Below are positions 33,131 through 43,183 of a stretch of DNA of 64,000 nucleotides, one piece after another. Under the pieces are notes generated by a model. The model was not told the DNA's origin, searched no databases, and saw nothing but the letters and a program-made list of their open reading frames with translations. The DNA lies in contig JALDTO010000246.1 in the NCBI GenBank assembly GCA_023515725.1, forward strand, positions 92,677 to 156,676, read 5' to 3'. The stretch's first letter is position 1, and each line of letters opens with the position of its first letter. This DNA comes from Amoeboaphelidium protococcarum X5 (Eukaryota; Fungi; Aphelidiomycota). The position numbers were made by a program, and so were the translations under genes.

Positions 33131-33350
33131 ATTGAGCGATTAATTTTCTTGAAATCAATATAATTTTCTAATTCTGAACAATGAGTTGTTGGAGTAAAAA
33201 TCCGTAATGGAAAGAATGAAGATTGTGTTGTTTGCCACACAGAACAGACAGTAAGGACGACAACGTTCGCGATTCGCCTGACGACCACTTGCGCTCTGAT
33301 TAAGCGAACGACAAAGAACGACAGGGGAAATCAGGGACGCGGTCACATTA

Positions 33351-36195
33351 CAGTTCGTTTCAGTAAAATGTCCGATCACGGAAAAGTGTTTTGGGCACAA
33401 AAAATAATGACGAAGTTTTAAGCACGATACTTCCCTACAACAAATAGTATTAGAACTCGTAATGCGAAGCATACGTGTAATTTGAACAATTATAAGTAAC
33501 TTATGTGACGTCTGTTTAGATAATGCCGCAAAGTTCTCTATTTCATTCTCCAGTGATGGAAAGTGCCAATTTCAAAGCCATCGATTTTAGATTTAAGTAA
33601 TCAAGTGATGGATTATAGTAATAAGAATACTTTTCCTATATATTATGTAGTTTTTGACTTTAGAAATTTTCAAACAGTGCCAAGTAATGAAATTCAATTT
33701 CATCGTTACTAAAAGCGGCTCTTACAGCGGCTAGCAAACTCCAATAACTGACTTGTTGAAAAGGCCTATAAAAGCGCCAGACAGTTCACTATTTCTTCTT
33801 CCTCTTTCTTATCTAACTTCTCATAGATAAGAAGATATGGCAAAGAAAGTAACACGTAAATGCAAACTAAATACTGTCTTGAATCTTAGCGATGGTGATA
33901 AAGAGAGATTGATACCACAGATTCGACTGAGCTCAGTGCACCTCACCTTTGCATCCCGTCTGATCTATCTCAGTCTTAATGTATGGAATGAAGCCGGCAA
34001 GGCACTACCTGAGCTATCTCATTAGCAGTATTTCGCGTCAATGCTGGAGTATCTTTGCAACTCTGCGTTTCATCGTGACAATGAACACACACGAATACTG
34101 GCTGAAACAATCGCTCCTGAAGTGCGATAGAGATTGAGGCACGAAAGCCTGATTGGTCCAAATCCTAACCTGTACGTGTTTCAAGCGCGTAAGATTATTT
34201 AAGCTATCACCTGGCATCTGACTGAAGCTATATGGGTCTACTAGAAGAAGGTGATTAAAGCTTAAATGGAGGCCTTTAATGTAAAAGGCCGAAGGCTTAC
34301 CGTGTTTCTATAGCTGCTCAACTCTTTGCTGACTGAAGAAGCTGTTAACACGATGGAACACTTTGGGGGCGAGTACTTGGAGATTAATCCCGCGACTCAG
34401 ATACATTTGCCTCCTGATTACGATGCTGGTGAAGATGAGGAGACAATTGCGCAATAAGATGCTGCTATTAAGGACGAGTTGCTGCAATTGTTATAAGTTG
34501 AAGAAGTTCGGCACTTGGTCTCAATGCATCGTCACCATTTATTGGATATTGTCACCACTTCTTTTAAAGACAGAGCTCCAAGAAGGAGATACAGTAAAAG
34601 AAAAGCATAATCTCCTAGTCAGCTGCATGGACTCATCGGTTTCAAGCGATAGAAATCGGGTAAGATGAAGTAGCGTGATACCCATCAAACATACATGCCA
34701 TCAAGAGCACACCATGCATTTCAGAATTAGGAGGGCTAGAAAGTTTTGGTCCAATATCTGATGTATTAGCGTTAAACTCTCAAGGAGCTAGGCTTGCCAT
34801 CATTCAAGATTTTCCCTACTGGTACCGATGTTCCGCGCCACATCTGCTTTGACAATAAAGTTTTGGCTCAGTGGGGATTTGAACAGTATCGCCTGGGCAA
34901 TCAGTTGGGGGAGGAGTCGAAAGAGGAGGAGGATCAACGGTAATGTATCCTAAGGCTTAAAGTTTTGGGTCTTTAACAGCGGATGGCTCAATCTAAAAAC
35001 GTCAGTGTCAGTATCACCTCTGATGGTTTTGCGTGCTCCGTGTCTGTTTCAGATTAAGGTGGGAAAGCGTATGCAAATGAAGCTTCAGACCTGCAGAGAA
35101 AAGCACGAAGCATTGACGTGTCTCAAGTAATTGTTGGGGCTTTTGCTTTGGAAAACTGTCGGAATCTCCAACAAAGATTAGATGGCTCTCGATTGATTGG
35201 CGTTGACCCTGGTAAGAAGAACGTACTGGTGTGGGGCGACGACGCGGACGTCGATGGTGCAATTACGCTAAAAGAAGCCAAGAAGGAGCTAAAAGAAACG
35301 GACCACATATCTGCTGGATACTGGTAACGTCTTGCATTGACTACAGAGTCTGAAGCCCATCTGTTGCATATCAAACCAACTGAAATCACGCTGATGGAGT
35401 AAGATATGGCCTAATCAAACACTTGCCAGTAGTATCTCGATGTTTACATCAGATATTTTGAGGACGTCTATGCCTTCTACTCAAGATCATTCCATCGTAA
35501 TTGGAGATTCCGACGATTTTGCGCGACCAAGTCTGCGTTTGGTAAAGTCATCAACATGATGTATGGCAGACCAAAGCCACCAGTGCCTAAAATCAACGAT
35601 CGGCGCCGAGGTAAAGCTGCAAAGAAGAGGAAACGCGAACTGCGTAAATCTAATGGCAAGTTTTCACCTCCAGATAAGCCTCCGGTAATTGCGCTTGGTG
35701 ACGCTGGTGTGAAGCACGTGCGTGGTAATCCTCCTGTTCCGGTGAGAAAATTCGCGTTTGAATTCAGTCGTCGGGCATTGGTAGTTATAACGCCGGAGTT
35801 CCACACTAGCAAGCAGCACTCATTATGTCATGCAGATCTTCAATGGGAGCATGAAGTGGTGATGAGGTGCCGACACAAGAAGGCAAAGAAGATACTGCCT
35901 GGTCGTCGCCGGGCTTAAACTGTCTGCATCAAAGCTGATGGTCCAGAAATCCTATCGTACGAATGTCCTGATCGTTTTAACCGAAGAGTCCAATCAAGAT
36001 TTGGAGTTTGCCCAAACTGCCAAAACACTGGATGTGACGTCTTTGTAGATCGGGACGTTAATGCTTACAGGAGTATGGCTCAAATAGTCCGCCATTACGC
36101 GATGCATGGTAGCAGACCTTAATGGAATTGCCGCGCCGAAAGGCGCGCCTGATATATACAGTAATGTTTGTCGGACAACCCGATGAAATAGACTG
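33351..36195 (+). mobile_element. non-autonomous Tc1/mariner-type TIR element carrying Fanzor1, flanked by TA at 33349-33350 and 36196-36197
   Basis: Left end CAGTTCGTTTCAGTAAAATGTCCGA versus reverse complement of right end CAGTCTATTTCATCGGGTTGTCCGA: 16/25 identical without gaps. Both ends abut TA. No transposase inside. Confidence 0.7.
33837..36152 (+). CDS. Fanzor1 RNA-guided RuvC endonuclease (771 aa)
   Basis: Uninterrupted frame under UAR=Gln. SFKIFP, HICFD, SITSDGFACSV, RuvC-I IGVDPG, IALGDA, RuvC-II PEFHTSK, CPNC, RuvC-III DRDVNA. Confidence 0.93.
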
Positions 36196-36215
36196 TACAG
36201 TATGGAGTGATAGCA
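36130..36215 (+). ncRNA. candidate Fanzor1 omega-RNA (scaffold plus flanking guide)
   Basis: GAAA-tetraloop hairpin CGCGCC-GAAA-GGCGCG (36132-36147) and a long hairpin at 36157-36197 ending at the element boundary; position matches known Fanzor omega-RNAs. Confidence 0.6.
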
Positions 36216-36311
36216 ATAAATGAATAATGAATCCCCGTTACTCGACACGCTTAATAATAATCGTATGACAATAGTTAAAGATTTTAATAAATTGCAAATG
36301 AACAACTCGAT

Positions 36312-38235
36312 TTATTAGCCGTTTACAGACTTACTATTGGCAATATTCAAACTTTTATCCGGCCTATCCAGTTTCAACCGGCGAAGAGACGAGTGAATAG
36401 ACCTGCCTACGCCAAAACGTAATAGAGTAATGAGCACCTGCAATTGGCCTTTAGTCAGACTGGATGCAAATTCATCAAATGTCTAATCAAAATTATGACT
36501 ACTTAGGCGATTGTCGAATAGCTTCTTCAGTCCCAATTTAATTGCATATTTGAGCTAATTGTCAGATGGAGTAACGTATCGCCATTACGCGTCTTGTTGC
36601 AACTGTCGATATTACGATCGTTTATCACTCTTCAAGTACGTATCTACAGCTTTAAGAACAAAATGCAGCTTGTTCTTATGAATCGGAAGGCGAATTTAAT
36701 ACTGAGCTTTAGTGGTCTTAACCTTGCAAACTTTAATGGCCTCATACATCGAAGTGGCAGCGGTCTTTTCAACCACAATCATACTCCCGTCCAACATATT
36801 CAGCACGTATTTCTCAGCTTCCACTTGGATCCAGGCAAGATTATTCATAGCACTTAAAAGTCCACTTTAGCTGTGACTTTCGTTATTAGCTGAAAACAAT
36901 TTCCACTCATCGCCAACCTTTACTTGTTTCAATAGAGTAAGCTAATCAGCTAATTCCTGCTTAATGTCATTAACATCCGTTGTGGAGACGACTTGTTAAC
37001 GTTCGGAATCTAAATTGACACCATCCTCAGTATCAGAGTGCAATCCAAGCAGAGATGGAGAGGTGTATGCCTTATTTCGAGTACAATTATCAACAAAGTC
37101 GAGTACGGTGCAAACTTACTTGCTAGCATGCAGCCTCATACCGCGGCCTACCATTTACTGAAACAAGGTGGCAGATTTGGTGGGACGTGCCATTACTATG
37201 CAGTCAATGTTAGGAATATCAGTTCCTTCAGTCAAGATGGCGCAATTGATTAACACTGGTATTTCGCCAGCTTTAAATTGTTGAATCGACTAAAATCGTT
37301 CTACATTATGTGTCTTGGCAGTAATTACGCGACATGGAATATGACAAAGTTGAAATTGCTGCTGGAGTGCCAAACAATGACCAACATCAACAGCAAACAC
37401 AATAGTAGACTTCAACTGCTTCTCACTGGACACCTATTACCATGACTGAACGACAGCTTGATTTCTCTCTTTAGTATTCACAAGACGAGACAATTCACCC
37501 AAATCATAATCCTCTGCCACCATCTTGATCTTAGCTAGCGATTGCTCCAGATCCACCTCTGCTCTAACACTTTGCACGTTGATATCACACAGCCACCCGT
37601 CCTGTATCATTTCGCGCAAGTCTTTATGATACACAATCTCTTGGAAGACTTTACCAAGACTGATGGCATCGTGTCGCTAAACTGTGGCGGAACATCCCCA
37701 TAGAAGTAGATGAGAATCATCTTGCAAAGCACCAAAATGATCAAAGATTCGCATGTAAGTTGAGGCAGTTGCATGATGAGCTACCTAAACAAAGCCACTC
37801 AATTATAGATATTAATTATGGAACTATCGAAGCGCGTATAGTATTACCTTCATCAATCAATATTGCCTTAAAGTCTAGAGGGTTATACTTTAAGATTCTT
37901 GAAGTTCGGGAGCGTGAAAGAGACTAGACACTTGCGACAATGACATCAGAATCCAAGACATTAGCTTTTCGATTTCCAATATCGATATCGACACGCAAAT
38001 GGGGAGCGAACTTTCTAATTTATGTGTAAGCTTAGCTTATAAGCTCCTGACGATGAGCCAAGACTAATGTTTTAACTGCAGAGGGGGTTGGACTAGGAAT
38101 TTGAGGTATCAGATTGCTAAAGATGACCGTCTTACCAGCGGCAACAGGCAGACTGACAATCTGTCTTTTAATTCCACGCCTAAAAGCAGCCAGCGACTCT
38201 TCAATGCATTACAACTGGTAATTTCGCAACTACAT
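36312..38235 (-). CDS. IRC3: Irc3-like SF2 DEAH helicase, two exons (intron 37781-37847); 3' end uncertain (TAA-TAA at 36312-36317, first in-frame TGA at 35994-35996)
   Basis: [28 protein letters not shown] across a 67-bp intron, [29 protein letters not shown]. Confidence 0.88.
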
Positions 38236-41660: not shown

Positions 41661-42101
41661 TCAATCAACTTTCCTCTGCTCCAAAACTTAATGAAGCAGG
41701 TTCAAGACATCTTAAATGGCCTTCCTATCCACCTCTCTCTCCTCGTCCGCCTTCTTCCTGTAATTGTCGGCCCTCTCTCTCTCCTCGTCCGCCTTCTTCC
41801 TGTAATTGTCGGCCCTCTCTCTCTCCTCCTCGCCCTTTCGTCTCTCCCCTTCCACCATTCCTCGTAAAGTCTCAATATTACCAGCCAGTTGCGAGACTTT
41901 ACTTTCCAACTCACTTACTCTTGCCACAATCGATTCCAAATTGCGGCTTTCGGCTGATGGATACGTCGCCTGAGCTATTGATGATAGGGGATTTCTAAGG
42001 TTGACACTCAATTAGATAGAGTCGGGATTGACAAAGTCCCCAAAAAAGCTCTCTGAGCTGTCGGACTAATTCGGCGATTGTGTAGGTACAGGTGCAGGCA
42101 T
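41661..42101 (-). CDS. hypothetical coiled-coil protein with a 12-aa repeat (EERERADNYRKKAD)
   Basis: Open frame of 146 aa; 36-bp tandem repeat at ~41735-41830. Confidence 0.55.
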
Positions 42102-43183
42102 TTGTGATATTCTGGCGTAAGGACGACATTGTTTAGAGCGCACAGGAAATACATATACCAGTTGCTAAGAAACCATTTTTTAGAGTAAATATGTGAATTA
42201 TCTTCGCTTCAATGGTTGTTAGGAATTTCAATCACTCAGTGGTTGGTATAAAAGAAAGTGTGTGGATGAAGTCGTAGAAATATTACGACATTACTTTCCA
42301 TTACGCTGATTGGCTAATTGGTCGTGGATGTCATAAATTAGTAACACTTTGCGGCAACTCCAATCCTACTCTGAACTTGTCGCTATTTAAAGAAACTCGA
42401 AACCATATAATATTTGTAAAGATAATTCAGTTTGTCCGCCGTCATCTCTAAAATAAACAAAGACGGCACCTACGGAACTATTAGCAGATCTTATCTTTTA
42501 CCGGCCCAATACGTTTGAAACTGCATATTTGCTGAAGTCTTTTCACTATAATGAGGTGGCCTTACTGAACATCGTTCCATTTTAGTGCGCTTTGGCAACA
42601 ATCCATATTTAAAATGGAACTACTGTCGCGAAAACTTTAGACTCTTGTTTCAAACATCCACATCAATCTATCTAATTGCCATCTATCTATTATTTAATTG
42701 GATGGATCCAAAGCCGTAGATGGCGCGCAGCGACATGCCCCCATTGTTTACTGAGGCATTAAAAGACGCCTATACACACCAATCTGAAATCAGTTAAATC
42801 AACAAACTTTGTAACGCGTGTGATGCTGCGTGTAACTATCGTTTACTGTCGGTCAGAATGACGAACTGCGGATATTTCGATACATAACACACATCAATGC
42901 ATCCGTGCGAATATAATGTTTCTGACCAGTATGGAGTCGATTACATTGAAAAAATCCAGCGCGCGCCGGTATAATGCCTTTTCATCTTCAAGCTTAGTTT
43001 GAATCCACATGCTCTGATTAAACAGGCGCAGTTGATTTCGAATCAAAATTCAGGGGCTTTCTCAGCCCCGATAACATCATCCAGTGTCGACGCCTCTCGT
43101 TCACTCCCACTCTCTCTCTCTGTGTCGCTTATCATCTATAAACAGCTTTGATTTGCACATAATCTAATTAACAATTGCACACA

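Follow-up and report, generated by a model that had tools for sequence, protein, structure and literature searches.

A Tc1-type non-autonomous element carrying a Fanzor1 gene and a predicted omega-RNA in Amoeboaphelidium protococcarum

The algal parasite Amoeboaphelidium protococcarum harbours a 2.85-kb Tc1-type non-autonomous element with a TA duplication and a Fanzor1 gene as cargo, located at 33351-36195 of the 64,000-nucleotide stretch of DNA analysed here (the window). Taken together, the data very probably describe an element mobilised by a Tc1 transposase that combines an intact Fanzor1 with its omega-RNA and would be restored by ATTA-guided cleavage. A one-sided preference for ATTA insertion sites is also evident, and its source is weighed below.

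An intact Fanzor1 gene in the host code

The Fanzor1 ORF lies on the plus strand at 33837-36152, from an ATG at 33837 to a TGA at 36150-36152, and encodes 771 amino acids under translation table 6. Its frame contains 14 TAA and 10 TAG codons and no internal TGA, and its translation is identical to the 771-aa database protein P0002, which bears out the claim of a first-pass annotation that the 771-codon frame is broken only by TAA and TAG. The window is gene-dense under table 6 and has almost no ORFs under the standard code, and A. protococcarum reads UAR as Gln (PMC5304391). Six long host ORFs contain 177 TAR and 163 CAR codons, and the Fanzor ORF 24 and 26. Relative to a subfamily at 86% identity, 14 of the 24 TAR codons remain TAR and seven become CAR (TAR aligned to TAR or CAR at 21/24 positions), with a dN/dS of 0.17. 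The TAR/CAR interchange and the dN/dS value therefore point to a gene under purifying selection in the UAR=Gln code; the read-through proposed at the outset agrees with both codon comparisons, which show a gene that, judged by its codons, has long been adapted to the code of its host.

The system had also been described as hidden by this code. Standard-code ORF calling on the DNA does fragment the frame (longest piece 161 aa), but the full protein and its paralogues are already present in NCBI nr in the correct code, labelled only as hypothetical. A database search with the 161-aa stop-free piece as query returned the full-length P0002, whose cluster consists of hypothetical proteins of A. protococcarum. 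The Fanzor1 is visible to protein-level mining and merely unannotated. Our literature search found no mention of an aphelid or Amoeboaphelidium Fanzor in the text of papers; the accessible part of Saito et al. includes a mined table with two A. occidentale proteins, and an earlier listing of the present family is possible (PMC10432273).

An in-frame N-terminal extension at 33609-33836 was rejected, as it is not conserved in the 772-aa subfamily. A start upstream of the ATG at 33837 is ruled out, since a conserved TATA-like block precedes this ATG, at which all sister proteins also start in the alignment.

All RuvC and Fanzor1 motifs named in the first reading are present: VDPG (D457, 35205), PEFHTSK (E654, 35796), DRDVNA (D740), FKIFP at residue 323, HICFD at 335 and TSDG at 394. 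The catalytic triad is D457/E654/D740 and the zinc site H661-x2-C664 ... C725-x2-C728. The RuvC signature comprises D457-P-G, E654 followed after six residues by H661, and R739-D740; a glutamate six residues ahead of the zinc site is the Fanzor arrangement (PMC13565253). DPG and DRD are kept in 19/19 full-length proteins checked, the E654 motif is seen in the alignment, and the three RuvC acidic residues are conserved over the 771-, 772-, 759- and 802-aa families. In the TNB zinc site (H-x2-C ... C-x2-C), the first ligand is His in the 771-aa family; the 759-aa sister retains C-x2-C.

An AlphaFold2 model built from a 40-sequence alignment reached a pLDDT of 80 and a pTM of 0.77. Foldseek returned seven matches below E 0.001, all of them Fanzor1 structures (SpuFz1, PpFz1 and GtFz1; E 5e-16 to 3e-10), with the next match at 1e-3. 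VIA-align Z scores were 19.5, 17.3 and 15.1 for SpuFz1, PpFz1 and GtFz1, and at most 11.4 for Cas12, TnpB and Fanzor2. The family profile matched the same three proteins in the PDB with E values of 2e-19, 2e-16 and 7e-12, and TnpB with 0.009; in the profile alignment, D457, E654 and D740 fall opposite the SpuFz1 motifs DP, E-x-x-TS and RD. By predicted fold and by profile, the 771-aa protein is a Fanzor1, closer to SpuFz1, GtFz1 and PpFz1 than to Fanzor2 or TnpB, as first proposed, and its location in a DNA transposon of a eukaryote fits this class. A Pfam search of six stop-free pieces and of full-length P0002 gave no real match (PF07282 does not match P0002 and matches 16 of 40 relatives), and phmmer with the single protein found no match in the PDB; the family profile did.

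A mobile element with young copies

The element ends are TA/CAGT at 33349-33354 and ACTG/TA at 36192-36197, with the flanking TA at 33349-33350 and 36196-36197. The left Tc1-type terminal inverted repeat (TIR; 33351-33376, plus strand) has the same start in all copies, and the right TIR (36170-36195, minus strand) is identical to it at 16/25 positions; on their own these TIRs are too weak to be detected by a repeat finder. Boundaries, TA duplication and TIRs had been proposed from this single copy, and they were confirmed by ten full-length copies elsewhere in the genome, which share the first and last bases, are 98-100% identical, and each lie between two TA with different flanks. The TIRs and TA duplication are those of a Tc1/mariner non-autonomous element, and the empty sites agree. 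Homeologous empty sites with a single TA were found for the window locus (on contig C136) and for copy L010 (inside the window near 42200). The latter site, at window positions 42057-42220, is the homeologue of the L010 locus on contig C181, is ~74% identical to it and has a single TA after GAAT.

The 771-aa ORF is intact in eight of the ten full-length copies and frameshifted in the other two, and copies L008 and L009 are identical across 2,849 bp at different loci. Recent spread in A. protococcarum, and hence recent activity, is likely, in keeping with the initial view of a potentially active element. Further copies carry an internal duplication (L011/L014) or an internal insertion (L013/L015). 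The former (G000 C264:380-384k) is an 884-bp internal tandem duplication that could have arisen by slippage during gap repair, and its right flank reads TA-CAG-TA, as at the window copy. The 771-aa family would represent a strain-specific burst, because all members of its cluster come from the assembly under study. Decayed remnants are present as well. An older 772-aa subfamily predominates in the assembly of a second strain, and L012 and L068 represent one 772-aa subfamily insertion common to both strains.

Besides other copies and an empty allele, both of which were found (the allele as a homeologous site), the first-pass annotation had envisaged MITE derivatives. No MITE or ghost copies with these TIRs were detected in the genome, where 30 of 30 perfect TIR matches are Fanzor copies or the C98 Tc1 element described below. 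A metagenome TIR scan gave six matches, of which the five checked are without Fanzor or Tc1 similarity and were judged to be chance; the sixth (L070), which comes from the assembly of a human-gut metagenome, was excluded from all analyses.

Within the 490-bp leader, conservation with the 86% subfamily is limited to 33767-33836 (plus strand), which comprises a TATA-like box (33767-33774) and a pyrimidine-rich leader and is likely to function as a Pol II core promoter and 5′ UTR. The leader contains no transposase relic; its origin as such a relic is ruled out, and the unit is without a transposase, as originally stated.

A predicted omega-RNA that closes on the right TA

The predicted omega-RNA scaffold spans 36110-36197 (plus strand), with its 5′ start at about 36110-36125, and overlaps the last 9-14 codons of the ORF. 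This region folds with z = -4.9 (0/200 shuffles as good) into a GNRA hairpin within the last codons (36133-36146) and a terminal hairpin (36157-36197), for which the right TIR provides the 3′ arm. The 5′ arm of the terminal helix tracks the transposon end in each sister family (CAG-TA and TTG-TA instead of CTG-TA). Two-sided changes occur in 4/11 pairs across three families, and slid controls fall to 19-53% paired; the comparison comprises only three independent families, its shuffle control ignores relatedness, and the first hairpin is also coding. Folding and covariation thus support the structured 3′ RNA that had been suggested, and the scaffold has no match in Rfam.

The terminal helix closes on the right TA (36196-36197, plus strand), and therefore the target-site duplication would be paired within the scaffold, as in Fanzor1 structures (PMC13565253), and the guide would start at 36198, 2 nt downstream of the start of 36196 predicted earlier. 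The predicted guide of the window copy (~15 nt, 36198-36212, plus strand) is locus-specific, being variable over 14 right flanks; its length is set by analogy to SpuFz1 (PMC10432273). A conserved and apparently structured RNA at the right end that includes the 3′ duplication and is followed by a variable guide is the arrangement characteristic of Fanzor1. A search of the DNA examined turned up no perfect target for a guide, and an apparent target of the L010 guide in L048 proved to be a chance 13-mer.

The scaffold covariance model detected 30 scaffold-like sites, about eight of them outside the three families (G000 C264:1907k, C98:638k, C146:664k, C154:430k, C244:442k, C200:106k, C264:102k and C212:57k). 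Several of these have a short Fanzor RuvC-II fragment in inverted orientation 2.4-3 kb away, and the sites are possibly ghost loci or further families.

Candidate helpers and sister families

A degenerate TIR pattern matches only Fanzor copies and Tc1 elements in the genome. The DD34E Tc1 on contig C98 has perfect TIRs that are identical to the left end at 22/26 positions, and its transposase is split and frameshifted; the Tc1 on contig C155 is 1,186 bp long, retains both TIRs, gives HTH and DDE matches, and has a TIR identity of 20/25. By this comparison, the Fanzor1 element shares its TIRs with DDE/D transposase elements of the same genome, and Tc1 elements with such related TIRs are likely candidates for the helper transposase. 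The two halves of the C98 Tc1 (G000 C98:185,525 and 191,912; L048 and L049) are permuted and separated by 6.4 kb, and their TIRs face outward. A decayed Fanzor end of the 759 type, complete with its scaffold, follows the N-terminal half, and an empty site for this Tc1 is found in L058 and L059.

Two sister Fanzor families occur in the same species, with proteins of 759 aa (42% identity) and 802 aa (39-41%). The element of the 759-aa sister is 4.56 kb long and encodes a pogo-type DDE_1 transposase of its own in an open frame (~390 aa with HTH). It has short CTG/CAG ends, a TA duplication and the same scaffold, and is found at L062:264-4819, L066:1764-6319 and L067:1767-6319 (second strain), and at G000 C207:293k and C249. 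From this gene content, it is apparently an autonomous sister system. The third family, that of the 802-aa Fanzor1, is ~3.28 kb long (L063:1665-4940 and L064:5166-8440) and has a TTG-TA right end that is not directly mirrored at the left. A metagenome contig from ENA (L069, 3,572 bp) encodes a standard-code 939-aa relative with 39% identity over the RuvC piece, and shows a Fanzor1 clade that, on this similarity, reaches beyond UAR=Gln hosts; the 3′ end of L069 gave no score with the scaffold covariance model.

Probable excision footprints and target-site preference

To the right of the element, an extra CAG-TA at 36198-36202 (plus strand) is probably a footprint of Tc1-type excision, left when this site was occupied before. 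The homeologous empty site reads CACAT-TA-TGGAG, and the window copy is followed by TA-CAG-TA-TGGAG. When the flanks are joined without CAGTA, the frame of the neighbouring helicase gene ends in HSIM-stop, like its counterpart in the homeologue; this end is lost when CAGTA is retained. If an element starting with CAG is excised by a Tc1/mariner transposase, TA-CAG-TA is the expected footprint. On the simplest reading of CAGTA, an excision would have been followed by a second insertion at this ATTA; alternatively, another insertion may have nested in the right TA and been excised later. The empty site predicted earlier (...ggtcacat-TA-) was off by 5 nt: the homeologue lacks CAGTA, and the site as predicted is thus a footprinted allele and not the ancestral one. 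The same 5-nt footprint follows L011/L014, which makes 2/14 right ends (P ~4e-4, post hoc).

The neighbouring gene (36198-37856, minus strand) is convergent and encodes an Irc3-like helicase, with the element inserted within the last two codons of its table-6 frame. This frame now reads on for ~67 codons, crossing the omega-RNA in antisense and entering the Fanzor ORF. Beyond a tandem TAA-TAA located ~40 codons upstream, the homeologue is less well conserved, and the helicase tail may be weakly constrained or untranslated.

Among 15 independent left junctions, TTA is present at 15/15 and ATTA at 13/15, against backgrounds of 0.30 and 0.11 (P ~1e-8 and ~2e-11, respectively). A mirror-image bias is absent from the right flank (AT 0/14). 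In Spu-1, the conserved CA-TA upstream is its measured TAM (PMC10432273). By this parallel, the left bias predicts ATTA as the TAM of the window Fanzor1, a refinement of the TAM ending in TA put forward earlier. At the window site the predicted TAM occupies 33347-33350 (plus strand), including the left TA duplication at 33349-33350. The base before ATTA is C at this site, and A or C at 13/15 sites.

The bias does not extend to transposase-only relatives. The six ends of four Tc1 elements are preceded by CTA, ATA, ATA, ATA, CTA and CTA, with TTA at 0/6; the difference from the Fanzor copies (Fisher P 2e-5 by ends and ~3e-4 by elements) rests on small numbers and on four Tc1 controls that are not proven helpers. 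The 759-aa pogo-type sister lies behind AATTA and GATTA at its two sites. With no TTA bias in the Tc1 relatives and ATTA in the pogo-borne sister, the bias would follow the Fanzor and not the transposase type. Among copies less than 0.5% diverged, the ATTA bias is already near total.

Because the preference is absent from transposase-only Tc1 relatives and common to the pogo-borne sister, we tentatively entertain the idea that it is imposed by the Fanzor, through homing that retains TAM-adjacent copies or through steering of the transpososome, and not by the transposase, with the footprinted sites recording excision and re-occupation. If true, this preference would be direct genomic evidence of the use of a Fanzor to a cut-and-paste DDE element, with both partners at hand for reconstitution.

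Two more specific accounts of the bias compete with the favoured reading of a Tc1-mobilised, ATTA-restored element. Under the first, which we consider unlikely, the Fanzor steers insertion itself: the RNP or protein would bind ATTA and, via the shared right end or a protein contact, bring in the Tc1 transpososome always in one orientation, and footprinted sites would be revisited for that reason. A bias that is one-sided, near total at less than 0.5% divergence, absent from the Tc1 ends (0/6) and recurrent in the pogo-borne sister is what this account expects, as are the 2/14 sites that look re-occupied. The same pattern, however, would result from retention selection or from the own preference of an unseen helper, the four Tc1 elements used as controls may not be the actual helpers, the pogo sites number only two, and we know of no precedent for a Fanzor steering transposon insertion.

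Under the second, which seems very unlikely, the true helper transposase prefers ATTA when acting on asymmetric ends, and the Fanzor cuts little or not at all in vivo, acting as an RNA-guided binder (for instance to regulate transposition) or travelling as a passenger. The TIRs differ at 9/25 positions, which may make the transpososome asymmetric; His is atypical as first zinc ligand; and DDE excision already breaks DNA, to which a nuclease adds little (PMC13565253). On the other hand, related Tc1 elements are without ATTA bias, and the RuvC acidic residues conserved in the 771-, 772-, 759- and 802-aa families argue for selected catalysis.

That the locus is a pseudogene with premature stops, or its copies assembly duplicates of one locus, can be virtually dismissed: the 24 in-frame TAR codons and near-identical copies invite the idea, but TAR and CAR are about equally common in host ORFs (177 vs 163), TAR or CAR stands opposite TAR at 21/24 sister positions, every copy has different flanks, and the UAR=Gln code is published (PMC5304391).

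Proposed mechanism and its implications

In the mechanism we favour, a DD34E Tc1 transposase, presumably supplied by one of the candidate helpers, would recognise the TIRs, move the element in trans and duplicate the TA. Pol II would transcribe the gene from the conserved TATA-like block. The omega-RNA, whose structure is backed by covariation, would be transcribed through the ORF end and the right TIR into flanking DNA, with subsequent processing of its 3′ end. The resulting RNP would cut double-stranded DNA at 5′-ATTA followed by the first ~15 nt of the copy's right flank, that is, at a cleanly vacated donor site, and repair from the sister chromatid would then restore the element, by analogy with the TnpB and Fanzor1 literature. 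Copies would be found almost only behind ATTA if only these can be restored, or if the helper transposase has co-evolved to choose such sites. Such restorative homing may be rare, because the footprint usually left by Tc1 excision would stand in the way of the guide.

What a Fanzor naturally contributes to a DDE transposon is not obvious, as DDE excision makes its own break and footprint (PMC10432273; PMC13565253). The genome studied here provides a young family with intact members, 15 mapped insertion sites, homeologous sites that are empty, probable footprints, Tc1 elements as candidate helpers and a sister that combines pogo and Fanzor and is apparently autonomous. With candidate helpers, controls and footprints available, this contribution is therefore testable by reconstitution. 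The distant Fanzor1 clade (14% identity to SpuFz1), with its compact 75-90 nt scaffold and predicted ATTA TAM, is also a candidate for editing.

Comparison with known systems

RuvC-TNB core, right-flank guide and proposed restorative homing are common to the window element, the TnpB of IS200/IS605 and IS607, and Fanzor2. TnpB and Fanzor2 match the window Fanzor1 much less well than Fanzor1s do (Z 9-10; profile E ~0.009), and IS605 differs from Tc1 in being without TIRs or target-site duplication and in its scarless excision.

PpFz1 (Parasitella parasitica) and GtFz1 (Guillardia theta) match the Fanzor1 fold at 12-15% identity, with reported TAMs of ATN and TTAA. The GtFz1 omega-RNA likewise overlaps C-terminal codons, whereas GtFz1 is without inverted repeats and carries Asn as its third catalytic residue, unlike the window Fanzor1.

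SpuFz1 is the best fold match (rmsd 4.5 over 531 residues), with window-specific inserts in REC and TNB (771 vs ~635 aa). Its element, Spu-1 of Spizellomyces punctatus, is likewise a single-ORF non-autonomous element with a TA duplication, ~30-bp TIRs and many young intact copies (PMC3627910; PMC10432273). In both, the dinucleotide before the left TA is conserved (CA-TA in Spu-1, AT-TA here), and the omega-RNA runs over the right TIR into a variable guide. The window element differs in its asymmetric TIRs, table-6 coding and His as first zinc ligand, in a scaffold that overlaps the ORF end and does not follow the stop as in Spu-1, and in having no ghost or MITE copies with its TIRs in the genome. 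Candidate helpers with related TIRs are present for it, whereas none were found for Spu-1 (PMC10432273).

PUl-4, PGv-1 and PUl-1, from other hosts, are Mariner/Tc1-borne Fanzor-only elements that have TA duplications and share TIRs with confirmed Mariner members (PMC3627910). The accessible portion of that source describes no omega-RNA or TAM for them; it does describe autonomous relatives with transposase plus Fanzor, a place taken here by the 759-aa pogo-type family. The architecture of the window element is that of Spu-1 and of the Fanzor1 elements on Mariner transposons described by Bao and Jurka, and its type is already known.
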